A stretch of 64,000 nt of DNA. Origin: Lepidodermella squamata (taxonomy: Eukaryota; Animalia; Gastrotricha). The notes under the pieces are model-generated. The model did no database searches, was not told where the DNA came from, and was given only the letters and a program-made list of their open reading frames with translations. Position 1 is the first letter of the stretch; every line of letters begins with the position of its first letter. Position numbers and translations under genes: made by a program. Positions 14,002 to 61,027 of this stretch are shown here, in pieces. The stretch spans positions 1,984,001-2,048,000 of the forward strand of contig JBLDXI010000004.1 in assembly GCA_047495785.1 (NCBI GenBank). The letters are read 5' to 3'.

Positions 14002-14537
14002 TTTGGAAACTTTACAAAAAAGCTATGATAAAGCTACAAACAAAGGCTTGATAAATTCTTCTCCATATACGCGTAAACGTGCAGCCTAAGTATTTTGCAT
14101 ATATTAAGCTTTTATTCGTGTCTTTTTGCATAGTGATATATTACCATCACTATATTACTATTCGTGTTTTTTCTTAGTTTATAATATTGACGGAATACGC
14201 AATAGTCAAAGACCATGTTGGCAATACTCAAACTAGATTATCGTTGAAGATCTCGGAATAGATTGAAAACATCCAGTTAATGTTTGCGCTGCAGCTTGGC
14301 TATTCTGAGGTCGGGCCTCGATCGCTTCGCAACCGGCGACTTCAACCAGTACAGCAAAGCGTGTGTTGTGATTGTAATAACCGCATCGGTCATAGTTCGC
14401 ATGCTGAAACCCGGACTCGTCGATAGCGTCGGCTATGCTTAAATGTATCATTCATCACAGATCGCTTCGCTAATTAGATCCCAGTGACCCCTACACTAGA
14501 ATTTACTAGAGATAGAACGGTATATACCCATATTGGC

Positions 14538-14693
14538 GGAGCTTCTCTCATCTCGAAGCAATGGCTGATAACAGCTGCGCATTGCGTTTGGAATGCTGGA
14601 GAGACTCCGACTTTGTGCATGGAAGTGTTCATTTACCTCTTTGATGGTATATTTTTCATTGGCATAGTATCAAAGCGCTGATAGGTCGCCATA
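14538..14693 (+). pseudogene. Inverted fragment of a protease paralogue (part of exon 2, intron 2, start of exon 3)
   Basis: GASLISKQWLITAAHCVWNAGETPT, then an intron remnant and tag|tatcaaagcgctgataggtcgccata. Opposite strand to copy 1; no other exons present. Confidence 0.85.
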
Positions 14694-24476: not shown

Positions 24477-25534
24477 CAGTGATCCGACTAGGTCTGAGTG
24501 CTAGGGGGTACGCCTAAAAGTGGTAAAAAGAATTTCGCTCGCGAACTTCGTTCGCTCGCATTGTCAGCTAACATCTATACTTACTATTAATATACTTTCA
24601 TTTTTCATTAGAAATTGGCAACGTGCACTAATTTTACAGGTGTATACATAGTTGAACTGAAGCGGTATATTAAACAGGCTATCCTTCTTGTGTGCGAGCG
24701 AAGCGAGCAAGAAAATTTTAGATTTTCAAAGCAATTCTGCCCAAAATTGCATTTAAATTGATATAAATTATTAACAAACTGTTGAAATTACTTTAAATTT
24801 TCAATAGATATCGTCTAAAAAATGTAGCGCGTAAAAAATTAAAAATCAAAATTCAAAATTGCGGAATTTTTAAAAATAAATTAGATATTCTGAATCAGCA
24901 TGAAAAGTTAGGCTAGTGTGCAAATTTGCGCGCGATTACATTGAAAATTCAAGAAGAAATGAGACGTTGAAGAAGCGCGCTTGTGAGTGTGTGACTAGCA
25001 CGCGCACGTCAACTGCGAGCGCTTTTCTCCGGTTAATGCGTGTACAACCTTGCGCGCGTTTGCGAGGAAGCTGATTTCGTAGTGCGCGCACTCACTAAAA
25101 TGCTTACTTTCCACTACCTATTTCTCTCTCAATTTTCAATGTAATCGCGCGCAAATTTGCACACTAGCCTAACTTTTCATGCTGATTCAGAATATCTAAT
25201 TTCTTTTTAAAAGTTCCGCAGCGTTTAAATTTTGATTTTTAATTTTTACGCTCATTATCGGAAATTTATTAGGGTACTCCAAGTTGTTTGGATTCTCGCT
25301 GTAAGCTTGGTTATCGAAAGCCACACCAATTATTATACGTAAAACGCTTGGAAAGCTGATAATAGTGTCATTTAGAATGAAAAATTTCAAATTTTGACCC
25401 ATGGTGAAGCCAGATTTTTTCATAAAAATTTCCTTTTTCAAATCTGCTAGGGGGTACGCGGCACCCCTTCCACTTTTTGGGTCTTCTCCAAGGGGGTACG
25501 CGCCACCCCCGTACCCCCCGCACTCGGAACACTG
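24477..25534. mobile_element. Non-autonomous hAT element inserted in the CR1 RT
   Basis: TIR cagtg(a/t)tccga; 8-bp TSD aggcaaag at 24469-24476 and 25535-25542; contains a nested palindromic MITE at ~24827-25252. Confidence 0.9.
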
Positions 25535-28500
25535 AGGCAAAGATTTTTTCGAGAGCGAGAGATAAGTTAGAAGAAGAAAATAATGCATTATCGAAGGAAA
25601 ATTTAATATATAATTTACAATCATCAGCAAATAGTTTGACTTTGACTCCAGCAGGAAGAATAGGCACTAAATCGTTAATGTAAATTAGAAAGAGTAATGG
25701 GCCCAGGACAGAACCTTGGGGGACGCCACTTGTGACAGGCGTAGTAGAGCTAGACGAATTATTTACAACAACATATTGCGTGCGGTTGGAAAGATAGGCG
25801 GCAATCCAATTTAAAATTTCACCATCAAGACCAATAAGAGACAATTTTTTAAGAAGCTTTAAGTGACATATAGAATCAAAGGCCTTAGCAAAATCGATAT
25901 ACACGATGTCAACAAATTCACCGCATTCAATAGCAAAGCACCAATCAAGGGAACACTCGAGCATCTGAGAGGCAGTGGACTTGCGAGATAAAAAGCCATG
26001 CTGCTCGGGAGTAATAAATGAATTTTCGAGTAGGAAATCAAGAATAGCCGATTTAATTATTGATTCTAGGATTCTGCAGGCGGCTGAAGTCAAGGAAATG
26101 GGTCGATAATCAACAGGCTTTTTAGAATTAATTTTCTTTGGAATCGGTTTGACAGACGCGATTTGCCAAATTTTCGGGAGGTGAGACTGAGAAAAGGAAG
26201 ATCGAAATATATGAGCGAGAGGCTTGTACAGTGAGTGGGCGAGTTTTTTTAAGAATATGGTAGGCAGACCGTCAGGACAAATAGCGTAGGAATCAGACAG
26301 GTTTAGAATCGTCTTAAGAACTAGGTCATCGCTGATGTTAATAGAAGAAAGATTCAGAGTAGGTTTAGAGACATTTTCAACTGTAGAAGGTAATATTTTG
26401 TTGTCAACGGTAAAAACGGAGGTGAATTGAGCGTTTAACGCCTCGGCCTTATCTACATCCGAGGTGCAAATATTGTTTAGAGAATCTACAAGAGCAGGAA
26501 TATAAGGACGAGAATTAAGACGATTATTTGCATAATTGCATAACAGACGAATATTGTTAGCAGCGATCAGGGTGGCCACACTTTTATTATTAAAGTCTTT
26601 CACGGTTTTTTCATATTTTACAGATATTTTTTTATATTTAGTTAAGAGAATAGAATGATCAAAGGAATTTTTTTGAGCTTGGAGAACGAATAATGCGATT
26701 AGGCACGTGCACTTGTACGAGTGAATCAAGAAGGCTTAACAATTTATTATACATTAGATCGACGTCATTGCGATGCCCGAGAAAAAAGTGACCCAGTCAA
26801 CATTGTTAAGGTCGCGAGATATGGCATCATAGTTGGTTTTTCTGAAATTTTTATTGAAATTATTGAAATTATTTTCTGTTAAGACTGGATGTTCAAGTTT
26901 AATTTTGAACGTGACGGCATCATGATTTGAGAAGATAAACGGACAATTTACATCGACGTCATGAATAAGAGATACGTTGTTAGTGAGAAGAAGGTCAAGT
27001 ATGCTATTGGACAAAGGGAAAGTTGGTTTTGAAACTAATTGGCTGAGAGAATTTTTCTGGCAAAAATTCAGAAACGTTGACTCTAATGTTTTATCACTGA
27101 AATTGTTTGAATCCGGATGAAGCCAGTCAATGCGAGGAAAATTAAAATCACCGAGAAAGATAATAGGAGAAGTTGTAGTTTCACACAAATAATTCATACA
27201 TTTGGTTAATTCAGACAGATAACGCACATCATTATAAGGTGGCGATATACACAGGCAATAGTTATCGACAGATTATTTGAACAAATTAAGTTTATGGCGA
27301 CAATTTCAGAGTCGTTATTTAAATTATCAATTTTGTAAAATTGGAGATTATTTTTAATAAGAATACACACGCCACCGGCCCTTGAAGGCCGATCGCGACG
27401 AGCCGCAACGCGATAACACCCCACTTCTAACATAGCATCGGTGATGCCAGCGTGCAGCCATGTCTCACAAAGGCAAATAACGTCATATTTACAAGAAAGC
27501 AAAAAATCAGTTAACGCAAATTATGTTTTTTAACACTCCTACAATTCAGACTATAGACAGAGATGGCAAACAGAATAAAAGAAAGTGCACTCGATTGTTT
27601 TTGGTCCAAAGGAAGTCCTGCTGAAACCTAAGCGCCGGTCTTGCCGCGCCGATCGGTTGAGACGTTGTCCGTGCCAAGGTCGATCGGGACGAAAGCATCA
27701 GCCACGTGATCGTAGGCGAAAGTGCCAGACCCCACAGTCTCGAGCCGAAGCCCGTTAAGCCGGATTTTAAATTCTAGCTCCTTCCTGACAACCTGGTCAG
27801 CCGAGGCGCCTTTGACGACGATCTTGACTAGTTTTGGAGCTTGGCGAGACATGCGGAAAGCCTCGAACTCGACACCAGCCAGGTCAGGGACCTTTTTCTC
27901 CACCAGCTGGGCGAGAGTAGCGGCCGTTTCGCTTGCCTCCGGCTCGACATTATGAAGCACCACAGTATGCCGTAGACGATGTTCTTCGCCTTCGTTGAGT
28001 CGCAGCTCAAGCTTGAAGATTCGATCACCCTGCTCTTTTATCGTTGCAGCCTGTTTGGTATTTTGTTTTTCCAGTTCGGCGAGACGAGTGAGGAGTTGTT
28101 CGAGCCTTTCAAGCAATGGCTTGTTCGAGGCTTCATGAATTTTTTTAATTTCTCCCAGGTCTTGCTGTGAGAGTGTCATTAAGCACGCGACCAAGGTTAA
28201 AAATTGATAAAAAATTGATGTTGTGTTTAGAATGAAAAAGTTAAAAAAATGGCTTTCGGGCTTTCAAATAAAAAGCCTTAGTTTTCTCTTTCGGGCGTGT
28301 TTTTGCTAAATCGACATCTTTTTATACATGAGCTGAATCATGAGCTGAATCGAGCCTTCTGCACTTTCCCCCCCGCCCAGGTCATATTACCTTGATGAAC
28401 GCACGCAAACTTCCGGCTGTTTGGCAAACTAAATTTTCTCACATCTGTCTCGGCGATTGCAGTTGCAAGAAATTCAAAGTCTGAGCCAATGCCGTACAAC

Positions 28501-36030: not shown

Positions 36031-36212
36031 TATTAGATCACTCGTTTAGATCCTAATCTCGAAAACGCTCCCTCTCGTAAACTTCGACTCATGAAAAAAT
36101 CGCGCTCCACTCGGCTGCGCCTCGTTCCGCTTGCTCGTTTTTCACTCGTCTTCGTTTACTCGAAATTATTACGCGTTTTCTCGATTAGAATCTAAACTCG
36201 GTGCTCTAAAAT
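36031..36212. mobile_element. Short related MITE directly adjacent to 35265-36029
   Basis: ttagatcactcgtttagatcctaatc...gaaaacgc is mirrored by gcgttttc...gattagaatctaaactcggtgctctaa. Confidence 0.65.
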
Positions 36213-36451
36213 ATATTATAATTATTATTGTCTATGCTTTCGACATTGAAACCGCAGATTTCCTCGGTGCAGCGCGGTAGCAACAGCACGTATTCATAGG
36301 TGTCAGGGAAACATAATAAAAAACATGCTGCTGAATCGGCACAGACACTCAGAACTCAGAGTGAATATAAAAAGGAGCGATTTTTCTTTGCGCTTGTTTT
36401 GCAAACATTAGCGAATAGAAGAAATGAGTTATTTGAGTGATTCCGCTGGTT

Positions 36452-39400
36452 TCAACAAGACGACTTTGCTCGACTTGCTCCTCTCGACCTCAGCAAATCG
36501 GCCACACCGGTGCGGTCGTTGCAAATCGCATAATCAAGAGCCGTTTTGCCTTCTGCATTCGTGACATCCTTAATTACACCTCTATCAAGCAACAGTCGAG
36601 CTACTTCGACTTGCCCATTCACAGCCGCATTCATCAACGCCGTCTCGCCATTGTTTTCCTTGGCCTCGATGGCAGCGTTGCGATCCAGCAACAGTCGAGC
36701 TACTTCGACTTGCCCCCACCCAGCCGCAACCATCAACGCCGTGCTGCCACCGTTATTCTTGGCCTCGATGGCAGCGTTGCGATCCAGCAACAGTCGAGCT
36801 ACTTCGACTTGCCCCCGCGCAGCCGCAATCATCAACGCCGTCAGACCATCCTTATTATTGGCCTCGATGGCAGCGTTGCGATCTAGCAACAGTCCAGCTA
36901 CTTCGACTTGCCCTTTCTCAGCCGCATACATCAACGCCGTCAGACCATCCTTATCCTTGGCCTCGATGGCAGTGTTGCGATCCAGCAACAGTCGAGCTAC
37001 TTCGACTTGCCCTTTCTCAGCCGCCAACATCAACGCCGTCCTGTTATAGTAATTTTCCTTTAAATTCACATCGGCTCCACGATCGACAAACAGCTGAGCG
37101 ATCTGCAATCGCTGGTCGGATCGTGTCTGATTGCACGTAACACTGAGCAGCAGGGTGCTATTTTTCACAAAATACCAATTACCACAGTAAATCTCATTTG
37201 GGTTGCGCCAGTTCGGCTCGAATTTGCCGCCAGTGGATTCGTCAATCTCTGCAACGAGTTGCCGTACCTGCGCCACGTCGCCCGTCTTGGCTGTTGCATT
37301 CCACAACTGTTCGTACACTTCACGGACCTAAATTTAAAAAGACATTAGAAAAATGACGCAATAGAAAATAGATAAAAAAGACTGCGTAAATAATCCACTA
37401 CATATTTAGCATACTTATTAATCATTACTAGCATAACAGACGCCCTGGTATCTATCGAAAATCGAAAAACTCGGAAAGGCTATGCAGGCGACAACGCCAC
37501 ACGAGATGCGAACAATGGTCAGCGAGGCGAACGTTAAGCTTAGCACGCATGCTCCCGTTAAGTCCCGCTACTTCTCTCACTGATATGCATGTGCATATCC
37601 TTCCGCGCCAAACGAAATTTGTTAAATCGGTATTGCGGCATAAAAACTGCTTTTGATTGACCATCCATTTCATTGTTTTAAGCTAATAATCACCACTAAA
37701 GAAAAGGGAACAACACGGCGAAAGGCGGCTAATGTAGACAATTCAGCCAATTAAAGTAGTAAGACAATTGCTAAGTAAGGCACTTGGTTTCAATAAAATC
37801 TCGAGAAATCGATTGAGATACAGCATGAAAACTGAAAATTATAATGAGCTACTATTCACTCATCATTGGCTTGCATCAGATAGATCTCCTCAGCTTCAAT
37901 GAATTCATCGTGTTCTCCTACAACACATTCACATCTTTGGCAGAGCTTTGGATTTGATTTAATTTGATTTACCGCTTAAATCACGGGCCTCCTTCAATTA
38001 ATCAAGATCAATCGTTGTCCCACGCTGGTACGGGACTAAATCAATCAAATCAAATCATGAAATAGGGAACCTTAAGACCATTAAATTAAGACCTTGAGGC
38101 CATTAAATTCGTTTAGCGTTTGAATACCGTATTTTATTGAATAGTATCTTGGGTTATCATTTTTTCCGAACACGAAAAGTAGTTAAAATATCGGGCAATT
38201 ATTCGAGGAGGCTTTTGTTTAAGGCAAGCTATTATTTATTCTAAAACGTGAAATCACTTCAACCGACATTTTTAGTCATCAGCTTGAATATATTCCTCAT
38301 TGTCAAAGTAATTAAGCTTGAATCACTGTAGTTACCGTCCTCGTTTTCGCAGTTTCTCTTCTCTACGTCCCAATTCTTTCCTTGAGCTGATCACACGAGA
38401 CACTAGACCTATGTGGTATGTGGCTATTATTTACCTCTGGACCCAATATTGGATGCATTTTTGGGGCTATTTTTGTTTTCGGAGACAGCTTTTTGCAAAG
38501 CTTCGAGCGACTGCGAAGTGAATTTGACGGAACAGCCCAATTTGCACTTGCATTTTGTCAGCTGAGCTACGGTTTCGAATAACCAACCCTGTTTACTTCA
38601 AACTAATTCCTCTCTAACGTGCGTAACTCCCAATCTCAATCGTTTGGTCTCTTCAATGAACCAGCGGTTCTGTCGATTTGGACGTATAGGGATTACATTC
38701 CAGAAATCTTTTTGATCAGCTTTACGAAGTATTTCATCTTTCAACGTGTACTCGTTTTCGCGACTGAAAGCCCACTCTCCCTGCTACAACAATGTCGACT
38801 AATGGCTTGCAGTATTCGCCAGTCACATCGAAAATCGTCGAAAAACATGTAACATCTGCGGTGAGGCGCCTCGAAATCACATACTGCTGATCATAGAAAT
38901 TTACCATTTGCTAACTGTTCATAACAATTTGCAATTTGCAGTTGACCGGAATAGATGCTTCACGGGGTTAATCAAACCGGAGCTATTTCCCACAATCATT
39001 TCGGAAACTCGAATAAGCAAATGAAGCAAAGTGCGAAGAGAACATTTCGCAAACAGTGGCGCTTCGCTCTTAGCAGCAGTCTTCCGTTTGGCATAACCAA
39101 TCATCTTGATTTGTTGAAAATTACTGGAATGAAGCTGGAAGATCTCGTGTTCTTTTTACTCTGATTTCACATTCCACTATTGTAACACTATGTCGACTTA
39201 ACCTACGACTAGTTTAATTTAGTGGAAAACTTACAGGTCTTCGTTGACTCGAGACGCAGGAACCAGGCTGGGACCAGGTTGCGTTCAAGAGGCACGATAC
39301 GGCAGCATTTCCTCGGAGCTCGAAATTCTGGTTGCATGATATGGATCGAGTGGCTCCGACGCTCGTCAGACCAGGAGATACACCGCCATTTTGTATCGTA

Positions 39401-41012
39401 GGCGGCTGTCCACAAACTTTATACGGTAATTTGTTAGAAGAATCAACAGTGAGTGGAAAATGAGTCACCTGCTGCTTCACAGCTACCAGTCGCAGACCAG
39501 CTGCCGTTTGCTTGGCACTCACTTGTTCCCTGGCCAACGAGTTTGAAGCCCGGATTGCAGACCAACGTCATTGTGGACAAGTACGCTGTCGATCTGTTGG
39601 AGCTCGTCAAATATCCATTACTTATTACAGTAGCGGGGCCACAGTCTTAATTATACTTATGGAGAATCAGTTTAGAAGAGTCGCTATTACTTACTTAATG
39701 GGTTACACCTGCCATTTATCACCGGTCGAAATGGAGGAAAACACGAAGCAATCGAGACAGAAGACGAATAGGTGTAACCAGCGTTGCATTTCACGCTAAC
39801 AGCCCCTCCTCTTTCCACTGCAGCTCCAGGCCTCAGAACTGCGCCAGTATCTTCTGATGTTTCAGGATCCACTCGGGTCACAAATCCCGCCGACACGTTA
39901 GGCACGGGACAAGACTGCTCCGGAGTACTCACGGTAGTCTGGCTTCGAACATCTGTGTTGCCGGAAATCCAATCGAGAACCTTGCAGACTCTGCTGTAGA
40001 TGCCAGGAGTGTATCCGTTGCAGGACTCATCGCCGTTAGAAATAATGCCGAGAAGGTAAGTCTGCCTCGATTTCAAACACATGAGAGGCCCACCAGAATC
40101 CCCGAAGCAAACATCGCTGTCATCGGCGGCGAAACACATCTTCGAGTCGGTGATGGTGACCGCGTCAGAGCGGCCTCGCGAATATTCCATTGAGCAGTTT
40201 CGGTACGATCGAACTTGAAGATCCAGCTTCCTCGGGATTTCAGATAGTCTGGCTAAAATACAAGAGAGCGATTAGTAAAGACATCAGGATGGAATGGTGT
40301 TAAATTACGAAACATACTGTATGCAAAGTGACCCCAGCCAACTGCAACTGCTGAATCGCATCCGTCGATCGAATTCGCAGTGACAGAGTTGGCCCGGCAC
40401 ATGGTTGCTGCGTCGGGCAAACAAATCGGTTTGATCTGCTGCGAGAATCTGGGAACGGGTGTCGTCAGGCGCAGAAGAGCGAAATCAAAGTCGTAGAAAT
40501 TCTGACTCCCTTTGTAAAGCGGATGCACCAATGGAGGCAGCGACACGAGAGATTCGTAAGAGCCCGTCTCAGACCGGAAACTGATATTGTGGCGACCTAG
40601 TAGGGCTTTGATCCTAGGCACAGATAAGAGATTAGACCATCAAACAGGGCAAAACAACGGGAAAATCTTACAAAATCGGAGTTTCTCCGGCATCCCAAAC
40701 ACAATGAGCAGCTGTAATCAGCCATTGCCTCGAGATGAGAGAAGCTCCGCAGTACGAAGCTGATGTTTCACCGTTTTTGTACATTTCAAGAAAGACCTAT
40801 GGCGACATCCTGTTTGTGTTAAATTGCATTAACATTGAATTGAAACAAACCAGCCATGGGTAGTCGTTTGGTCCTGCTGGATGGCTGCCAGGGCCTCGCG
40901 ATTTCGCCATAGCCGTGGGGTTTACAGCACCACATTCGGCATTGTCTTGAGCAAAGACTACTCCGGATACCAGCCCAAGGAAGGCAATTATCCTAGCTAT
41001 AACAAGGTGCAT
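36452..41012 (-). CDS. Secreted trypsin-like serine protease - 3x sushi/CCP - ankyrin-repeat protein, copy 2 (predicted 791 aa)
   Basis: Exons 41012-40851, 40796-40672, 40613-40318, 40252-39695, 39645-39469, 39416-39235, 37327-36452; total 2376 nt, in frame; same intron positions and phases as copy 1; triad intact. Confidence 0.88.
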
Positions 41013-41792
41013 TTTGTCAATTGCACAAGAAATTCTGAGGTAGAGCTACTAAAATGGCTTGATAAAACCTTCTTCGTGCGCGCATAAACGTGCAGCTTTC
41101 TCTTTAAAGAGTATGTTTCTATTATTATGAAGTTTTTATTCGTGTTTACATCTCTGTTTGTAGTTTGTAATAACATGATGAGATACATGTAAGATTTCAA
41201 AGCGGAGAATACTCTGCGGCTAGGTTTGAAACATCCTGCATCCTGTTAAAATAACCTAATGTAACGGCCAGGTCTGCGTATTACTAGAAATTATTCTGTC
41301 CGCCTTCATCAAACCGCTTAAGCCTGGGTCAAACTTTTCGTGGCTGGGCGCCAAGTGGCGGGCATTTACTATCCTCATTAAGGCATCTCGAAAACAACAT
41401 GGGCCAGCAAAAATTGTGCCCACTAATAATATGCTTTAGTAACGAATAAAGAAGGACTAATTTTCACACGTTGTTTTTTCTCTCAATTTTTTGTTTCTCT
41501 TACAGGGACAACATTTGTTTCGTGCTTTGAGCAGTCGAGAAAGTCCAGTATGCGAAAGCCTTCGTGTCGTTGTTCAACTTGGTTCCTCGAAGCGTGCTAG
41601 CGCGGTCTGGAAGTTCTTTACTCACCAGCCGTAGAGAAGTTGTTTTTCACCACTCGATAGTGTTCCTATTTTCTCTTCATGGAAATCGAACTTAGTTTCA
41701 TCTGACGCGGAAATTGTACGTCGCCTTTCCTGGGATTGCTAATACTCACCTGCGCTAAAGTGTCAGTTCTCACTGATTTGGCAGTTTTCTAG

Positions 41793-45170: not shown

Positions 45171-46540
45171 ATGGAAAGATTTTACATATACAGCAGCATG
45201 CCGTATGCGTGTTTTAGCTATGTAGCTGCTGTTGCCGTCCTCATTCGCGTGTCATCAGCTCAGGGCGATGCAATATCAGCGGCGGATATTAGCAGTTACT
45301 ACTATCCCCCAGGCGAGGTCTTCTCGCAAGACCTGATCAAACGCTGCAATTTGAAGACTAAAACGCGCCCGTCACGTGACCACGACGAACCCGTTGCCGT
45401 CACGATCGATACGTACCCGTACCGATTCTGCGGCATTTTCGACAAGGAACAAACGTGAGCTACTATTAACAATGCCTTCGATAATATGCCCTAGTAAAAA
45501 CTATTCTAAAGGTACTCGATGATAATCGAATTCGATTTCACGTGGTATCATCCGTGTGCGCAATGGAGCGCGAATGATAGCCGCCTGCGGTCTTTCGAAC
45601 TGCCTGCCTCCGAATGCTGGTACCCGCGAGTTCAGCACACGAATGCAAATGACGATATATCGAAGCTGTTCAGGTTGCAGATTTGGTCTTCCAATTCATG
45701 CATATTCACGGTTTCTTCATTTAGCTCGGTAGAACCAATTGGCAAAATGTTTCTGTACAGCGATGGCCGACAGGTGTTGCCGGTTGTTTTGGAAGTCAAT
45801 TCTTTCTGCCAATTGAAGTTTTACCAACACTTTATTCTAACTGTGCTGCTGCATCTGTTTTTTGTTGAAGGCTGATGAAATTCCCCTTTGATACTCAAAA
45901 CTGCCGCGTCGAAATCGAATCGTGGTATATTGCCCCTGAGGTTCGACTGCAACTGCCGGAGAATCAGAGCGATCTCAACGACAGAATCGCCGACAATTTC
46001 ATATCAGCGAATGACATTTGGGAGCTCACGGCAACTAATGCCAGCGTTGCTATCCATTCGTACAGTGGCGATGCAAAAGGTGAAAAGTACTACCGCGTGA
46101 TTTACGAGTTCAGCTACAGGCGCAAATCGGCGTCGTACATCATGAACATATTCCTGCCCAGCTTCGCGCTGCTCTCGCTGATGCTCTCCGTGTGGGTGAT
46201 GCCGCCCGAGCACCCGGACCGCCCCGGCTTCTGCATGACCGTCGTGCTCGCCTACACCGTCCTGCTGTCCATTGTCTCGGACTCGCTGCCGAAAACCTCC
46301 GAGCTCAGCTACACGCTCATCTTCATGGGCGCGCAGATGGTCATCGGCTGTCTGTGCACCATCTACGCCCTGGTAACGTGCCAACTTGCAAATGTCCCAA
46401 TGTTCAAGAAGCGGAAATTCAAACTTGGAAAGATAAAGTTGACGCTCATTCAAGCTGTTGATATGACGTTTTTCGTCTTTCTTATCATAGCGAGTTCAGT
46501 TATAAATGTTGTAATTCTTTACAACATGATAATATCTTAA
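45171..46540 (+). CDS. Cys-loop ligand-gated ion channel subunit 1 (nAChR/5-HT3-like, non-alpha; predicted 402 aa)
   Basis: Exons 45171-45454, 45512-45673, 45725-45817, 45871-46540 (1209 nt, in frame). Signal peptide; TRP, WYP; Cys-loop CQLKLMKFPFDTQNC; ESW; pre-M1 RR; four TM helices; LPKTS. Confidence 0.92.
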
Positions 46541-52783: not shown

Positions 52784-54328
52784 ATGCCTTCAAAATGGTT
52801 GCTCTTGCGCCTTGTCTTTCTCAGTGCTCTCTTTCTCAAGCCATCGATGGCCCAGGACGAAGAAGTGAAGCCGGTGCTGGACAAGTATTTGCCCCCAGGC
52901 GAGGCGTTCAAGCAGTCAATAACCGAACGCTGTAGCTTGAAGACGAAAACGCGGCCGTGCAGAGATTTCGATGAAGTCACAAATGTAACAGTCGAAACTT
53001 TCCCATACCGATTCAGTGGCATTTCCGACAAGGAGCAATCGTAAACGAAATCCTGCCTCGCAATGACGCAAGAATAACGCATTTTTTTCCTTACGGTAGG
53101 TATTCAATGATGATTGAGTTGGATTTCACGTGGCAACACCCGTGTGCTCAATGGAGCGACAGCGATACGAAGCTAAAATCGTTCGAATTGATAGCAGTAG
53201 ATTGCTGGTTCCCAAAAATTCAACACATCAACGCAAATGACGATATTTCTAAGCTAACTACGTAAATTTTAAACTGGCACCTCTCGTCTATAAAATGTCG
53301 GGTACTCGAAAGAAGACTGTTGCTTCAAGGGGATTTTAGCTGCCGAATTGCTAACCTTCTGAAATGTCCGGTGGTTCCAACTGAGAATAGAACCTCAAGT
53401 AGACAAATTTATCAGTAATTATCGGTATCCATGGACCCAGATAGTTCAACACTCACGAAATCCTTGAATCACCGAAATTATGTATAACCAAATATTTGTT
53501 CTGTAGCACTATGGAAGCCAACAGCAAAATATACGTATGGCGCGAAGGGCTGATGCTGCTGCCCGTGGTTTCAGAGATCAATTCATTTTGCCCGCTCAAG
53601 TCAGTTTCGTTTTTCTCTCCTATCTGGCGTTTAAATCTTCTCACATTTTCAGGCTGGCCAATTTCCCGTTCGATACCCAGAAGTGTCGCGTTGAGGTTGA
53701 GTCGTGGTTCGCATCAACTGAAGTTCGCCTGCAACTGCCGGAGAATCAGACAAGCATCGACCACAGAATAGGCGATAATTTCATATCCGAAAACGACATT
53801 TGGGAGCTGGCAGGAACGACCGCGATCGTTGACGCCCACACTTATCCAGGTGATACGACAGGTAACCGGTACTACCGCGTGATTTACGAGTTCAGCTACA
53901 GGCGCAAATCGGCTTCGTACATCATGAACATTTTCCTGCCGAGCTTCGCGCTGCTCTCGCTGATGCTCTCCGTGTGGGTGATGCCGCCCGAGCACCCGGA
54001 CCGCCCCGGCTTCTGCATGACCGTCGTGCTCGCCTACACCGTCCTGCTGTCGATCGTCTCGGACTCGCTGCCGAAAACCTCCGAGCTCAGCTACACGCTC
54101 ATCTTCATGGGCGCTCAGATGGTCATCGGCTGTCTGTGCACCATCTACGCCCTTTTAACATGCCAACTCGCGCATATTCCAATGTTCAAGAAACGCAATG
54201 TTACGTTATTTCGAAAAGTGCAACTGACCCTGATTCGAGTGATAGACCTGGCTTTCTTTTGTATACTGCTTGTAACAAGCATAACCATGGATAGCGTTAT
54301 TTTCAGTCGAATGATGTCTCAATCGTAG
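52784..54328 (+). CDS. Cys-loop ligand-gated ion channel subunit 2 (predicted 395 aa)
   Basis: Exons 52784-53040, 53100-53261, 53507-53599, 53653-54328 (1188 nt, in frame); Cys-loop CPLKLANFPFDTQKC; same introns as subunit 1. Confidence 0.92.
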
Positions 54329-56786: not shown

Positions 56787-59700
56787 TTAGGTCCAACACG
56801 TTGACGTCGCTCGACTTGCTCCTCTCGACCTCAGCAAATCGGCCGCATCAGTTTTGCTGTAGCAAATCGCAAAATCAAGAGCTGTTTTGCCATTAGCATT
56901 AGTGACATCCTTATTTGCACCTCTATCAAGCAACAGTCGAGCTACTTGGATGTACCCCCACCTAGCCACATGCATCAACGCCGTCTCGCCATATTTATCC
57001 TTGGCCTCGATGGCAGCGTTGCGATCCAGCAACAGTCGAACTGTTTCTGATTTGCCATTCGCAGCCGCCCAGATAAGCGCCGTCCTGCCATTTAGATCCT
57101 TTGCATCGATAGCAGCCTTGCGATCCAGCAACAGCCGAACTACTTCGACTTGCTCTTTCTCAGCCGCATGCATCAACGCCGTCCAGCCTTGGTTATCCTT
57201 AGCCTCTATGGCAGCGTTGCGATCCAGCAGCAGTCGAACTACTTCGACGTGCCCCCACCTAGCCGCATAGATCAACGCCGTCAAGCCATCGTTATTCTTG
57301 GCCTCGATGGCAGCGTTACGATCCAGCAGCAGTCGAGCTACTTCGACTTGCCCATTGTCAGCCGCCATCAACAACGCCGTCCAGCCATTGACATTCTTGG
57401 CCTCGATGGCAGCGTTGCGATCCAGCAACAGTCGAGCTACTTCGACTCCCCCATATCGAGCCGCATGCATCAACGCCGTCGAGTCTGCTAAATTTTCCTT
57501 TAAATTCACATCGGCTCCACGATCGACAAACAGCTGTGCAATTTGCAATCGCTGGCCTGATTGCGCCTCATTGCACGTAACACTGTGCAGCAGGGTGCCA
57601 TTTGTCACATAATACCAATTACCACAGCGAATCTCATTTGTGTTGCGCCAGTTCGGGTCGAATTTGCCGCCAGTGGATTCGTCGATCTCCGCAACGAGTT
57701 GCCGCACCTGCGCCACGTCGGCAGTGTCATGTGTCACATTCCACAACTGTTCGTACACTTCGCGGACCTAAACGTAACAAAGAACAAAAAGAAATTTAAA
57801 TCTCTATAGAGCCTGACTACATAGTTGAGAAAAACCTGAAGCTGAAAACGCACTATTTCTTTGCAAGCAAGCAGAAAAAGTAAATATAACTAACGACAAT
57901 ATAGATACAGTTTGGAAGACAAGGAAGGTTCTGGGTTCTGGCACATAAATGGGCTGATATTGAACAAAAGCAACAGTTGACGCTTGTTTATTATTGAGCA
58001 ACCCCATATTTTATTTGACTGCTGACTGCCTGTAATTGGCGTGCGTCTCAAATAATGACTCTGATATTGTCGCCATAAATCATAAATTCAACTTGCTCAA
58101 ATGTCGGGTGAAACTCGGTTCTGCACAGTCAGAAATGTCCGTCTGTCTCTACGTCTGTCCGTCCGCTTTTCTGGAGCCGCGCTCTTGACCCGCACTTGGC
58201 CTGCACACCTTCAATAAAATGCCGCGCGCACAAGCAAAATATATAGCGATTAGTAGGCACATTTATTTCTCCGATTGCTCGAGAACAATCAAGGATTTTC
58301 GATGCGATTTTTCAGCTATTGGCAGATCTAATCCGCGGTTAAAATTCTCTATAAGATTCTCTAGCAAAGGATATAGAGATGAAAGATTGAGATAAAAGTT
58401 CAGTTTTCGGGAATGTTTCTAGGCCTTCATTCAGTTGTTAAGCTTTGCAATTGAGAACCGAGAACCTCTACTCTCAGTCGTAAAACGTATTTTTCGTAGA
58501 TTTCACCATAAATTAATGAGATCTCCTCTTTTTTCGATTTTTTCGATTTTTTTTCGAGTTCACCTTAAAAGTTAAACGGGAAAAGCAAGGTGAATTGGTA
58601 AATGGCGTTCAGAAATATTCTTTAAAAATTTCTCGCGTCGCTCGGGGTAAGGTGACAACATTCCGAAATTTAGCATTTTTTGTAAAATGGGATGCCTTTC
58701 CTAAGGTTAACTCCAGCTATGGCTTGTAAAAAAATTCCAAAGCAAAATTCAATTAAAAAAGAATATTTGCCTCAAGCACCCTCTATTCCAAACAATAATC
58801 TGGAAATTGACTTTGATCATGGCTTCCCCATGTCTTTAGGCAATCTTAGTATAGGATAAATGGTGGAAGCGAAACGCGCGGAGGTCAATGAAGGAAGGCG
58901 TGAGAGCTATCAGAAATCAATCAGAGACGATTTTAATACTCATATCCTAAGTTTTTCAAGCACTGAGGGAAGTGGTAAACATATTGAAAACAGCCTGGAA
59001 CAGCCTTCTGTTTTCTTGATTCTGTTTATTCTTCTCTGACAACTTTTCTACCTTTTAAAAAATGTGCGCGCGTTCGCAGTCACGTGAGCTGAACAATGCG
59101 GGCGCCCTGCTGCGCCACTCAGCCTCTGTCCAACGATAGTGCGCGCTGATAAAGGGCAGTGCTCACTCCGTTACTATTCCTCCAAGCTGATTTCACTTTT
59201 GAAGCTGGATTCCGCGTCAAATAGCCCAATGACTGGTTTATTCTTTTGGAAAACTTACAGGTCTTCGCTGCCTGCAAGAACCAGGCTGGGACCAGGTTGC
59301 GTTCGAGAGGCACGATACGGCAGCATTTCCTCGAAGCTCGAAATTCGAGTTGCATAATATGGTTCGAGTGGCTCCGACGTTCGATAGACCAGAGGATATG
59401 GTGCCGTTTAGTACCGTGGGCAGAAGTCCACAAACTTTGAACGATAATTTGTTAGAAGAATCGACAGAATGAGTGGAAAATGAGTCACCTGCTGCTTTAC
59501 AGCTACCAGCTGCAGACCAGCTGCCGTTTGCTTGGCATTGGCTTGTTCCCGGACCGACGACTCTGAAGCCCGGATTGCACACGAATGTCACCGTGGACAA
59601 GTAAGATGTCGATCTGTTGGATGAGCTGGCCAAATAGCCGTTACTCGGTACAGGAGCGGGGCCACAGCCTTCATCATACTTATGGAGAATCAGTCTAGAA

Positions 59701-61027
59701 GAGTTGCTCTTACTTACTTATCGGGCTACACCTGCCATTTATCACCGGTCGAAATGGAGGTACGCACGTGGCGATCGAGACAGAGGACGAATAGGTGTAA
59801 CCAGGGTTGCATTTCAAGCTCACGGATCCACCTTTCTCCACAGTGGTTCCAGGTCTTAGAACCACGCCAGTATCTTCCGAAGTTTCCGGGTCCAATCGGG
59901 TCACAAGTCCCGCGGATACGATTGGTACAGGGCAAGACTGTTCCGGTGTACTCACGGTAGTCTGGCTGCGAACATCTGTGTTGTCGGAAATCCAATCGAG
60001 AACTTTGCAGACTCTGCTGTAGATGCCAGGAATGGATCCCTGGCAAAACCCATCGCCGTTCGAAATTATGCCCAGCAGGTAAATCTGTCTCGATTTCAAA
60101 CACATGAGAGGGCCCCCAGAATCGCCGGAGCAAACGTCGCTGCTGCCCTCGGCGGCTAGACACATTTTCGAGTCGGTGATGGTGACCGGTTCCGGGCTGC
60201 CCCGGGAATACTCCAGCGAGCAATTTCGGTAAGATCGAACTCGAAGATCCAGCTTTCTCGAGATCTCTGATAGCATGGCTAAAATACGAGAGAATTATAA
60301 GGAGATGAAGGTGAGAGAGGAGTGAGAGGAAGGGAAGGAAACATACTGGCTGCAGCGTAACCCCAGCCAACGGCAACTGCTGAATCGCATCCGTCAATCG
60401 AATTCGCAGTGGCCGAGTTAGCTCGGCACATGGTACGCGCATCCGGCAAACAAATCGGTTTGATCTTCTGTGAGAATCTGGAAACTGGGCCCGCCAGTCG
60501 CAGTAGGGCGAAATCAAAGTCGTAGAAATTCTGACTGCCGTTGTATTGCGGATGCACCAAAGGAGGCAGCGTCACCATCGATTCGTAAGAGCCCGCCTCT
60601 GAACGGACGTTGATGTTATGGCGACCTAGCTGCGCTTTGATCCTGTCACACTCGAAAATATACCAACGAAAAGGTGAAATTAAAATTTCACGTACAAAAT
60701 CGGAGTTTCTCCGGTATTCCAGACGCAATGAGCAGCTGTTATCAGCCATTGCTTCGAGATGAGGGAAGCTCCGCAGTACGACGCTGGTCTATCGCGGCTG
60801 TTGTAGATCTCAAGGAAGACCTGTAGCAACATCCTGTTAGTGTTGAAAAGCTTTCATATCGAATTGAAACAAACCAGCCACGGAAACTCATTTGCTTCTG
60901 CTGGTTGACTGCCTGGTCCTTTTATTTTCGCGATTGGTGTCATGACGCACTCGGAATTTTCTTGAGCGACCACTACTCCGGATAACAGCCAAAGCAAAGC
61001 GATTATACTAGCTTTTAGGTGGCGCAT
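56787..61027 (-). CDS. Secreted trypsin-like serine protease - 3x sushi/CCP - ankyrin-repeat protein, copy 3 (predicted 823 aa)
   Basis: Exons 61027-60875, 60820-60696, 60642-60347, 60278-59718, 59668-59489, 59434-59259, 57767-56787; total 2472 nt, in frame. Signal peptide MRHLKASIIALLWLLSGVVVA; triad intact. Confidence 0.88.

Follow-up and report, generated by a model that had tools for sequence, protein, structure and literature searches.

Three neighbouring genes of the gastrotrich Lepidodermella squamata most likely encode secreted protease-sushi-ankyrin proteins with a candidate variable binding array

Each of three neighbouring genes in the window (the whole 64,000-nt stretch of gastrotrich DNA analysed here) most likely makes one secreted protein composed of a serine protease, sushi (CCP) modules and ankyrin repeats, and the three look like members of a large and so far undescribed family whose secreted products would pair a binder with a protease. 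The best explanation overall, to which we assign a probability of about 0.6, is a family of single genes for secreted protease-CCP-ankyrin proteins in which the ankyrin array is a variable binder. Each locus would then be one seven-exon gene whose product enters the secretory pathway by a cleavable signal peptide, has no membrane span and combines an S1A (chymotrypsin-fold) protease carrying Asp189 with a three-CCP stalk and a C-terminal ankyrin solenoid. Ankyrin repeats are a textbook intracellular binding module, and the extracellular exceptions known to us are a spider toxin and effectors of pathogens. If dozens of animal genes place a signal peptide ahead of ankyrin arrays that have caps suited to an oxidising milieu and a variable binding face, and that are often linked to a protease by sushi modules, the DARPin principle would be one used naturally for secreted binders.

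The gene models were obtained by sequence reading and scripted splicing, with the start of exon 5 of locus B set from the three-locus alignment:

Locus A, 8837-14001, minus strand: paralogous seven-exon gene (2397 nt, 798 aa); exons 14001-13843, 13790-13666, 13612-13320, 11822-11265, 11215-11039, 10979-10798 and 9739-8837; intron 3 of 1497 nt, intron 6 of 1058 nt
Locus B, 36452-41012, minus strand: seven-exon gene (2376 nt, 791 aa)
Locus B exon 1 (E1), 40851-41012, minus strand: start codon, signal peptide (MHLVIARIIAFLGLVSGVVFA, followed by QD) and first protease residues (..AGPNDYPWL); phase-0 end
Locus B exon 2 (E2), 40672-40796, minus strand: protease, catalytic His (TAAHC); Pfam Trypsin 5e-07
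Locus B exon 3 (E3), 40318-40613, minus strand: protease, catalytic Asp (DFDFALLRL); Pfam Trypsin 1e-05
Locus B exon 4 (E4), 39695-40252, minus strand: C-terminal half of protease (Asp189, GDSGGP) and divergent CCP1; Pfam Trypsin 4e-17
Locus B exon 5 (E5), 39469-39645, minus strand: CCP2, phase 1-1; Pfam Sushi 5.8e-11
Locus B exon 6 (E6), 39235-39416, minus strand: CCP3, ..QRRP phase-0 end at donor gtaagt; Pfam Sushi 1.6e-10
Locus B intron 6, 37328-39234, minus strand: 1907 nt
Locus B exon 7 (E7), 36452-37327, minus strand: ankyrin exon to stop codon; Pfam Ank_2 1.8e-46
Locus C, 56787-61027, minus strand: paralogous seven-exon gene (2472 nt, 823 aa); exons 61027-60875, 60820-60696, 60642-60347, 60278-59718, 59668-59489, 59434-59259 and 57767-56787; intron 6 of 1491 nt

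These coding lengths reproduce exactly the sums given in the original prediction; all introns are of the GT..AG type and no internal stop interrupts the frames. The splice-site sequences of the predicted phase-0 join of the last CCP exon to the ankyrin exon, reading RRP followed by I/VREV, were confirmed in A, B and C (donor ...AGACCT followed by gtaagt, acceptor tttag followed by (A/G)TCCG(T/C)GAAGTG), and the domain order signal peptide, S1 protease, three CCP modules, ankyrin exon is present in all three loci. The paralogues share 77-84% DNA identity over exons and short introns. Exon 7 of locus B comprises a Cys- and sequon-bearing N-cap, four consensus ankyrin repeats in our own register (about six by Pfam), flanking capping repeats and a C-cap. 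Locus C has one repeat more than locus B, and the array of locus A is interrupted by a non-ankyrin insert of about 46 aa at 8996-9133.

The protease is recognized by Pfam (PF00089, Trypsin) in the pieces encoded by E2, E3 and E4, which cover profile positions 23-220. Its best PDB matches score about 50 bits and show no specific sequence kinship; they are chymotrypsin (5e-14), HGFA and tryptase. The His/Asp/Ser triad (TAAHC, DFDFALL, GDSGGP) is intact in A, B and C, and the Asp at position 189 is of the trypsin type; several paralogues (L005, L006, L009 and L012-L014) have lost the triad. In place of the zymogen activation motif (R/K before IVGG), the three genes read ..KSR-GPGSHPAGPNDYPW.. (B), KS-TGSQ.. 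(A) and KIK-GPGSQ.. (C), and residues at this position are not conserved across the family, so catalytic competence is uncertain. Given the dead proteases elsewhere in the family and the absence of the activation N-terminus from the three intact genes, proteolysis by the window proteins is putative rather than established. The window genes would join a binder to a potentially active protease, and in other members a dead protease would probably serve as scaffold or binding domain only.

Two of the three CCP modules that had been proposed, CCP2 (43 bits) and CCP3 (42 bits), are borne out by Pfam Sushi (cut-off 20.7) and are encoded by one exon each, phase 1-1 or 1-0. The third, CCP1 at the end of E4, is supported by predicted fold only: it scores 13.3 bits (E 0.11), under the cut-off, and lacks the conserved Trp. 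Its AF2 model (pLDDT 87) has PDB matches (TM 0.55-0.66, Foldseek E values of 0.02-0.5) almost exclusively among CCP modules, those of factor B, C2, CD55 and factor H included. On the strength of this model, CCP1 is taken as a CCP by predicted fold and not by sequence profile.

AlphaFold-type modelling of the ankyrin exon, suggested earlier as a check, gave paired helices with an AF2 pLDDT of 93. The model superposes on ankyrin-1 with a TM score of 0.82 (rmsd 2.0 A over 278 columns) and has DARPin structures among its best fold matches. Over 121 repeats, entropy is highest at positions 5, 13, 14, 10, 3, 16 and 2 of 33, and framework conservation is 85-100%, so that variation is concentrated on the concave, DARPin-type binding face. 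Non-synonymous divergence at the variable sites is about five times the framework value (p=5e-10), and dN/dS is 0.15-2.4 at variable sites versus 0.1-0.45 in the framework. In no single pair did dN/dS above 1 at variable sites reach significance (p=0.07-0.7); positive selection on the binding face was accordingly rejected as a proven result, and we limit the claim to hypervariability and exon-limited divergence. Unconstrained surface residues would produce a much similar pattern of variability.

The exon-limited divergence is seen against a twin copy of the ankyrin exon on contig C64. Identity between the two copies is 99% over the final 635 nt of intron 6 and 97-100% over the 3' flank; inside these near-identical flanks the exons themselves are only 80-88% identical (about 15% different) and differ by two in repeat number. 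The corresponding dS is 0.16 for the exon and 0.01 for the intron (p=1e-13). The variable face and the exon-limited diversity are compatible with a recognition module. In the favoured reading the array would be the variable ligand-binding part of the protein, with a near-invariant framework and with repeat number and concave-face residues differing between copies. The modular structure, together with an ankyrin exon that diverges within near-identical flanks, makes the family a good case for studying how a germline repertoire of binders is generated.

The family is extensive. At least 134 ankyrin-cap exons of the exon 7 type, 58 exons resembling exon 1 of locus B and about 46 full copies of the protease/CCP1 exon (E4) were found in the 121-Mb genome. 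The assembly contains no COX1, and its HSP70 shows an equal 76-78% identity to the proteins of molluscs (bivalves), arthropods and vertebrates. The family's modules include live and dead proteases, two or three CCPs and arrays of 3 to 26 or more repeats, all on phase-compatible exons. In our reading the family is lineage-specific: protease-CCP-ankyrin genes number 40 or more, and several dozen others share the same ankyrin exon, some of them being simple signal-peptide-plus-ankyrin genes. Database searches with the ankyrin exon returned generic ankyrin proteins only (at most 54% identity over the repeats), and the protease/CCP1 exon had no match above 45% identity among 1.84 billion cluster representatives; ten of its best multi-domain matches contained neither Sushi nor Ank. 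A search with an 80-aa junction-spanning peptide yielded no candidate, and ESM Atlas yielded trypsin or ankyrin clusters only. No close relative or published description was found in these exon and junction searches, which are not exhaustive for domain architecture.

As originally predicted, no transmembrane segment is encoded: none appeared in the hydropathy of the spliced proteins, and the search of intron 6 gave no usable extra exon. The sole hydrophobic segment is the signal peptide, with a hydropathy maximum at residues 3-21 and cleavage between V-F-A and Q; this call, like those of the glycosylation sites, was made by inspection. The next-highest windows are ankyrin helices that carry charges. 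All 28 cysteines, an even number, lie downstream of the signal peptide. Among 16 sequences, Cys48 and Cys65 of the cap are invariant, a C-terminal Cys pair is kept in 11 and jointly lost in 2, and the sequons N10-x-T and N55-x-S/T each occur in 14. Such Cys pairs and N-glycosylation sequons suggest that the ankyrin caps are adapted to an extracellular or luminal milieu, and the window proteins are predicted to be secreted.

Among the closest known systems are the mosaic proteases of the complement type (C1r/C1s/MASPs, factor B/C2 and horseshoe-crab factor C). In these, CCPs lie N-terminal to the protease in the company of CUB, EGF, vWA or lectin modules, while a separate subunit or domain provides recognition. 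The window genes share with them a putatively secreted S1A protease, CCP/sushi modules (CCP1-3 have a predicted fold like those of factor B, C2 and factor H) and, potentially, the principle of coupling recognition to proteolysis. They differ in that the candidate recognition element is the ankyrin array and the IVGG activation motif is absent. The reversal of module order noted at the outset holds: the order is protease-CCP-CCP-CCP, and no exon carries a further Pfam domain. The window proteins are hence not members of the C1r/C1s/MASP, factor B/C2 or factor C type, and the resemblance is one of functional analogy only. Of the earlier interpretation, the structural part (a single gene with a signal peptide and without a membrane span, CCPs C-terminal to the protease and ankyrins at the C-terminus) is well supported. 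'Complement-like' holds as an analogy and not as membership; a role as complement-like recognition protease, effector or toxin may be proposed.

Other systems resemble the ankyrin part. DARPins are man-made, and lamprey VLRs consist of LRRs assembled somatically. With both, the window family shares a fixed repeat framework, variation (at positions 2, 3, 5, 13 and 14 of 33) and variable repeat number; it differs in having germline diversity spread over at least 134 exons and in that binding is putative. Alpha-latrotoxin of widow-spider venom is an animal ankyrin solenoid that works outside cells, with 22 extracellular repeats (PMC13611351). No sequence relation to the window genes was seen beyond the repeat. 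The toxin has neither protease nor CCP, is not made with a classical signal peptide, and uses its ankyrins as the scaffold of a tetramer that forms pores. Secreted ANK effectors of Phytophthora sojae (PMC11139960), like those of Anaplasma, Ehrlichia and Legionella, are exported ankyrin arrays that are expanded and fast-evolving; these effectors act inside the host cell and have no protease-CCP part, in contrast to the window genes, which are spliced, belong to an animal and encode caps that bear disulfides and sequons.

The most likely role of the family would be that of a germline repertoire of secreted binders, and the family would offer a new candidate recognition or effector system. More specifically, and only tentatively, the repertoire may serve recognition by ankyrin arrays, many of them with an effector protease of their own attached by the CCP stalk, so that the sensor and the first protease of a complement-like reaction would be united in one chain; exchange or selection limited to the exon would maintain diversity, as it does for MHC genes. 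If this were true, ankyrin would be a third animal scaffold for the recognition of non-self or of ligands, beside immunoglobulin domains and LRRs. A doubtful alternative is that the same fusion is offensive, a gland-secreted effector or toxin directed at prey, host or competitor, whose ankyrins act on or inside the target and whose protease aids entry or damage. The eukaryotic precedents for signal-peptide-bearing or extracellular ankyrin proteins are offensive (PMC11139960, PMC13611351), and large tandem families with fast-changing surfaces and both live and dead enzymes are typical of venom and effector arsenals. Against such use, the proteins contain no pore-forming or translocation domain, and the conserved disulfide and sequon caps suggest an oxidising extracellular milieu and not the cytosol of a target cell.

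The one-gene reading, in which CCP3 is spliced to the ankyrin exon, is well supported by comparison of loci. Of the 46 full E4 copies in the genome, 41 are followed on their own strand by an ankyrin-cap exon no more than 12 kb downstream, and in 20 of these 41 the distance is within 1 kb. The exon order E1-E2-E3-E4-(E5)-E6-E7 is conserved in all 17 loci examined, 14 of which gave stop-free models in an automatic phase-aware builder. In 16 of the 17, a GT..AG intron in phase 0 separates the ankyrin exon from the last CCP exon. That intron measures 50 nt in L008, 57 nt in L007 and 116-505 nt in others, reaching 1907 nt in locus B; at 50 and 57 nt it is too short to contain an exon for a membrane span or one with a promoter. 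The ankyrin exon begins exactly at the splice acceptor and has no start codon of its own, the first ATG in exon 7 of locus B occurring no earlier than residue ~100. Taken together, these observations lead us to infer the E6-E7 splice in loci A, B and C.

Intron 6 of A, B and C is far longer than the 47-65 nt usual in this genome, which makes alternative polyadenylation to a protease-CCP-only product possible; read-through would add six codons before a stop. In locus B the length is inflated by dispersed repeats, which make up most of the intron, and depth of the RNA-like run X1 (taken as RNA by guess only) is about zero across it. The three introns are alignable only over their first ~50 nt and, as had been claimed, contain no common extra exon. 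A TM-like exon candidate in locus B (37567-37442) was rejected as absent from the paralogues and lying nearly entirely in a bin of zero X1 depth (37397-37567), and a short signal-peptide-like candidate in locus C (58262-58209) is likewise absent from the paralogues. Two matches on contig C10 resembling intron-less (retrocopy) CCP3-ankyrin junctions proved to be open frames running through the acceptor pyrimidine tract, not CCP sequence.

None of the RNA records examined crosses from E6 into E7 at any of the three loci (39235^37327 in locus B); X1 contigs identical to E4 and to the 3' end of locus B are present. One 250-nt X1 contig matches window positions 37251-37324 and continues beyond, the first 27 nt of the overhang being identical to the end of an E1-like exon at G000:C64:610303-610329, followed by the codon ATT. 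This locus (L015; G000:C64:607904-610440) consists of the E1-like exon and, after an intron of 635 nt, an ankyrin exon with 17 repeats, which differs from that of locus B at exactly the five positions seen in the contig. Splicing of a signal-peptide exon to an ankyrin exon is therefore real in the family. A single X1 contig joining 37249 to 39283 is ambiguous, with 30 letters on its shorter side, and an X2 joint of 37332 to 39228, rejected as a splice, is best read as coming from the genomic DNA of a paralogue in which this intron is short.

It is improbable, against this background, that a protease-CCP protein ending in intron 6 and an ankyrin protein (made by skipping from E1 to E7 or from another first exon) are mostly separate, the fusion being rare or absent. 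Since E1, like E6, has a phase-0 end, an E1-E7 join would be in frame, and the X1 contig documents a join of this type in the C64 sister gene; the 1.1-1.9 kb of intron 6 in A, B and C and the lack of a listed junction-crossing record for locus B point the same way. The C64 RNA, however, comes from a gene with no protease or CCP exons between its two exons, and so reflects a two-exon gene and not exon skipping. In addition, CCP3 and the ankyrin exon are separated by nothing but the 50-57-nt intron in paralogues, 41 of 46 protease exons retain an ankyrin exon behind them, and no signal-peptide-like first exon is common to the three copies of intron 6.

Retention inside the cell after entry into the ER (in a secretory granule, extrusive organelle or lysosome-like compartment, with the ankyrins organising cargo) is very unlikely: a signal peptide without a membrane span is in itself no proof of release and the conserved C-terminal cysteine could form the covalent multimers typical of packed granule contents, but the hydrophilic C-terminus (..AKSSC) has no KDEL-type or other known retention motif and the diversity of the binding face is hard to square with a housekeeping role in packing.

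Within the favoured family of secreted protease-CCP-ankyrin genes, the C64 gene shares the ankyrin exon type and the E1-type exon with the window genes and differs in having neither protease nor CCP and in being the member with direct RNA evidence. Its E1-type exon still encodes the start of the protease (..PAGPNNYSWL), a sign that the gene descends from a protease-CCP-ankyrin ancestor that lost E2-E6.

The window, which in the 121-Mb assembly (151 contigs) lies at C4:1984001-2048000, is eukaryotic DNA with short GT..AG introns. COX1 is absent from the assembly, and its HSP70 shows 76-78% identity to that of many phyla. A blastn comparison of the gene's stretch with the window recovered three paralogous loci, 77-84% identical to each other across exons and short introns:

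Locus A, about 8.8-14.1 kb, minus strand: protease-CCP-ankyrin gene.
Locus B, 36.4-41.1 kb, minus strand: the gene under study.
Locus C, 56.8-61.1 kb, minus strand: protease-CCP-ankyrin gene.

The seven-exon models originally predicted for them, of 2397, 2376 and 2472 nt, were reproduced exactly by sequence reading, three-copy alignment and scripted splicing, with GT..AG borders throughout and no internal stops. E1 encodes a signal peptide, E2-E4 the protease (E4 also CCP1), E5 and E6 CCP2 and CCP3, and E7 the ankyrin repeats. The three-locus alignment places the start of exon 5 of B at 39645 (acceptor ..attaag, then ACTGTGGCC..), making CCP2 a complete four-cysteine module. The final CCP exon ends in ..CGAAGACCT before the donor gtaagt, and the ankyrin exon follows the acceptor tttag with (A/G)TCCG(T/C)GAAGTG; these borders are as first described, both sides being in phase 0 and reading ..QRRP from the CCP side and (I/V)REV.. 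from the ankyrin side.

Comparison with other family members makes it highly probable that E6 and E7 are joined in A, B and C. Genome-wide we counted about 46 full copies of exon 4, at least 134 ankyrin N-cap copies and 58 E1-like exons; 41 of the 46 E4 copies are followed on their own strand by an ankyrin-cap exon no more than 12 kb away (3 kb or less in 33, 1 kb or less in 20). Fourteen further loci were fetched, giving 17 for comparison, and the colinear order E1-E2-E3-E4-(E5)-E6-E7 is kept in all 14. An automatic phase-aware builder returned stop-free models of six or seven exons at 14/17 loci, the other three (L011 among them) comprising one truncated locus and two with boundary problems. 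At 16/17 loci the CCP-ankyrin intron opens with a phase-0 GT donor after the final CCP and closes with a phase-0 AG acceptor ahead of (I/V)REV.

Two other arrangements, a separate ankyrin gene with its own first exon and a membrane-spanning exon hidden in intron 6, fare poorly. The CCP-ankyrin intron measures 1058-1907 nt in the window genes, 116-505 nt in others, and only 57 nt in L007 and 50 nt in L008, within the 47-65 nt of ordinary introns in this genome; neither a membrane-span exon nor a promoter or distinct first exon can fit into 50 nt. The 1907-nt intron 6 of B is made up for the most part of dispersed repeats that recur dozens of times in the genome, and scanning intron 6 for signal-peptide-like first exons or transmembrane-like phase-0 exons yielded just two chance candidates, neither of them shared, in agreement with the original observation that the three intron-6 sequences have no extra exon in common. 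Moreover, conservation of the ankyrin exon starts at the acceptor and its first Met lies about 100 residues in, so the exon is unable to start a protein. In A, B, C, L001, L004, L010 and L011 the E6/E7 join is preceded by a basic R-(Q/R)-R-R and then Pro or Thr (B has S-Q-R-R-P), a motif similar to a proprotein-convertase site and placed between CCP3 and the ankyrin part; the corresponding residues in other subfamilies are QQRS, KQRP or RLP.

Public sequencing runs containing the stretch number two, X1 (2015, labelled 'RNA?') and X2. The latter covers introns at about single-copy depth and is therefore DNA, and X1 covers exons with essentially nothing in intron 6. A 250-nt X1 contig matches window 37251-37324 with 5 differences and then runs on; in reverse complement the overhang reads ..GCAGGACCGAACAACTACTCATGGCTG-ATT, the end of an E1-type exon (..AGPNNYSWL) joined straight to the ankyrin exon (I-REV..). 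Its 27-mer has zero mismatches at G000:C64:610303-610329, in the gene described next, and at the duplicate C64:641363-641389:

L015, contig C64: two-exon gene with a signal-peptide exon ending ..CATGGCTG before the donor gtttgt, a 635-nt intron, the acceptor ..catatag followed by ATTCGTGAA.., and a 587-aa ankyrin exon.

Protease and CCP exons are absent between its two exons. Over the 74 nt the L015 ankyrin exon differs from that of B at exactly 5 positions, which together with the 27-mer identity identifies the contig as spliced mRNA of L015. X1 thus holds RNA of this species, the ankyrin exon type is transcribed, and its acceptor joins in frame to a signal-peptide exon. Further X1 contigs match B without a difference in E4 and at the 3' end, which makes expression of B or its near-twin probable. 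Among the X1 and X2 records listed, none crosses the E6/E7 junction of B itself: an X1 joint from 37249 to 39283 has 30 letters on one side only, with the intervening letters unknown, and an X2 joint from 37332 to 39228 was rejected as a B splice, as it fits paralogue genomic DNA with a different short intron.

Just one segment of the proteins is strongly hydrophobic; it is N-terminal and carries a small-residue cleavage motif (V-F-A, then Q-D); the next-highest hydropathy windows are ankyrin helix pairs containing charged residues. The C-terminus (..AKSSC) has neither a GPI-type tail nor KDEL. Each protein has 28 cysteines, all past the signal peptide; the protease accounts for 12, the CCPs together for another 12 and the ankyrin exon for 4. 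All of the 16 ankyrin exons compared have the cap cysteines at about 48 and 65; a C-terminal pair at positions -23 and -1 occurs in 11 of them, while 2 have lost both of its members, and the sequons N10-x-T and N55-x-S/T each occur in 14. Such cap cysteines and sequons are unusual among cytosolic ankyrin domains and offer circumstantial support for an oxidising, glycosylating route.

That there are three CCPs, as first proposed, proved correct, the first being divergent. Pfam Sushi scores are 43 bits for E5 and 42 bits for E6; CCP1, at the end of E4, has the spacing C-x40-C-x14-C-x11-C, highly conserved among paralogues, and scores only 13 bits. Its AlphaFold model (pLDDT 87) is all-beta, and its PDB matches are almost exclusively CCPs, those of factor B, C2, beta2-glycoprotein I, CD55, CR2 and factor H (TM 0.55-0.66). 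Three CCPs are present in A, B, C and L001 and two in most fetched loci; in at least one locus, L011, the intron from E4 to the next CCP exon seems to have been lost, leaving an open frame of 259 aa.

Exon 7 matches Pfam ankyrin families at E 2e-46 and is modelled as a continuous solenoid (pLDDT 93; TM 0.82 and rmsd 2.0 A to ankyrin-1 over 278/291 columns). The number of repeats per locus varies from 3 to 26 or more. In 121 repeats placed in register, positions 4, 6, 8, 22-26 and 28 are 92-100% conserved, and Shannon entropy is highest at positions 13 (3.86), 5 (3.84) and 14 (3.79), followed by 10, 3, 16 and 2. DARPin design randomises positions 2, 3, 5, 13, 14 and 33 for target binding. Nei-Gojobori dN/dS between paralogue pairs is 0.10-0.30 in the protease, about 0.24 in the CCPs, 0.11-0.45 in the ankyrin framework and 0.15-2.4 at the face positions, where dN is 5-10 times that of the framework; between B and its twin the proportions are 0.43 (face) and 0.086 (framework; p=5e-10). 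At face positions dN/dS exceeds 1 significantly in no single pair (p=0.07-0.7), and positive selection is accordingly not claimed as proven. The array looks like a variable binder. In exon 7 of locus A the repeat preceding the C-cap has given way, in frame, to about 46 aa of inserted acidic sequence that is not ankyrin (TDFRRDYDVDPADDPGDD...; window 8996-9133, minus strand).

Trypsin (Pfam) matches pieces of E2, E3 and E4, and A, B and C all retain His (TAAHC), Asp (DFDFALL), Ser (GDSGGP) and Asp189. The activation motif R/K-IVGG of chymotrypsin-family zymogens was not found at the equivalent site, which reads ..KSR-GPGS.. and is unconserved across the family. By profile and catalytic residues the domain, with its 12 cysteines, is assigned to S1A without a canonical activation site; proteolytic activity is possible, not assured. 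L005, L006, L009, L012, L013 and L014 are pseudo-proteases that lack the catalytic His, the serine motif GDSGGP or both: in L005, L009/L014 and L012/L013 Gln, Asp or Arg stands in place of His, and GDSGGP is missing from L005, L006, L009 and L014. Reading frames in these six are open and the protease domain is under purifying selection (dN/dS 0.16-0.30). Proteolysis is thus dispensable in part of the family, and the ankyrin exon is the constant element.

On the established gene structure, domains, family linkage, variability pattern and sister-gene splicing, we propose, with a probability of roughly 0.6 for the whole, a single secreted polypeptide whose variable ankyrin solenoid would bind a target and hold a trypsin-type protease beside it on a three-CCP stalk; in other members the protease domain would be a dead scaffold, and the family overall would form a germline binder repertoire. 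The structural part of the earlier reading is well supported (the join is conserved in paralogues and no extra exon is shared). As for its functional part, complement-like or effector/toxin, the targets may be microbes or other non-self, which would mean recognition or defence, or else molecules of prey or host, which would mean an effector or toxin. The known eukaryotic examples of exported ankyrins, Phytophthora ANK effectors (PMC11139960) and alpha-latrotoxin (PMC13611351), have offensive roles. A, B and C do not belong to the C1r/C1s/MASP, factor B/C2 or factor C groups, whose other modules they lack and to whose proteases theirs has no special kinship; as originally noted, their order, protease and then CCPs, is the reverse of that in complement-type proteases. 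No close relatives were found among 1.84 billion protein cluster representatives (the best, at 34-45% identity, are poly-trypsins without Sushi or Ank) or, within length limits, in a 5.8-billion sequence collection. Among about 8.4 million full-text papers, the 8 in which 'secreted ankyrin' or 'extracellular ankyrin' was found deal with bacteria, oomycetes or latrotoxin only, and the architecture may still occur elsewhere. Among secreted mosaic serine proteases and secreted repeat-protein binders, the domain architecture appears new, as does this use of ankyrin repeats.

One further paralogue was compared with window 36100-41200:

L017, G000:C64:780300-789300: near-twin of B.

The two are 94% identical in the 5' part of the gene, 99% over the final 635 nt of intron 6 (with 7 differences among 660 aligned columns) and 97-100% in the 3' flank, as against 80-88% in the ankyrin exon, where synonymous divergence is 0.16 (exon synonymous vs intron, p=1e-13) and L017 has two extra repeats (357 vs 291 aa). 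Divergence begins about 26 nt into the exon and ends about 28 nt ahead of the stop codon; the assembly contains no paralogue more than 86% identical to the ankyrin exon of B. Either flanks were homogenised with exon diversity retained or the exon was exchanged in patches; both fit, and both suggest that diversity of the ankyrin exon is favoured. Such a pattern is known from MHC genes. Intron 6 of L017 also carries an additional insertion of about 3.4 kb.

The first exon of the two-exon signal-peptide-ankyrin genes retains initial protease-domain residues (..PAGPNNYSWL), which suggests descent from protease-CCP-ankyrin genes by loss of E2-E6. Since E1 and E6 end in phase 0 and CCP exons are 1-1, exon reshuffling is frame-safe. 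At G000:C4:1825541-1828627 and C64:649799-653692, all that precedes the ankyrin-cap exon of exon 4 is its CCP1 half (query residues 96-185), the protease half being absent; these are probably signal-peptide-CCP-ankyrin variants. L012 (G000:C64:370500-374400) and L013 (C4:1557000-1562400) are near-identical (dS 0.04-0.1), and L012, whose ankyrin exon ends after 162 aa vs 657 aa in L013, probably represents a truncated copy. A stray, inverted fragment of protease exon 2/3 (window 14496-14609, plus strand; DNA similarity 14536-14691) was seen some 500 nt upstream of locus A, and L012 and L013 are likewise preceded by inverted fragments, of E1-E2; they may reflect recurrent head-to-head partial duplication. 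The window also contains:

2470-3860, minus strand: probable Mutator-like DNA transposon, formed by two neighbouring ORFs in which a MULE transposase domain (1e-08) and, weakly and under the cut-off, a FLYWCH zinc finger (4e-04) were matched.
25368-26729, minus strand: retroelement between loci A and B, a 453-aa ORF with reverse transcriptase RVT_1 (1e-25).
45875-46540 and 53537-54328, plus strand: two exons of tandem ligand-gated ion channel genes between B and C, each exon encoding the last part of a Cys-loop receptor ligand-binding domain and the first membrane helices.
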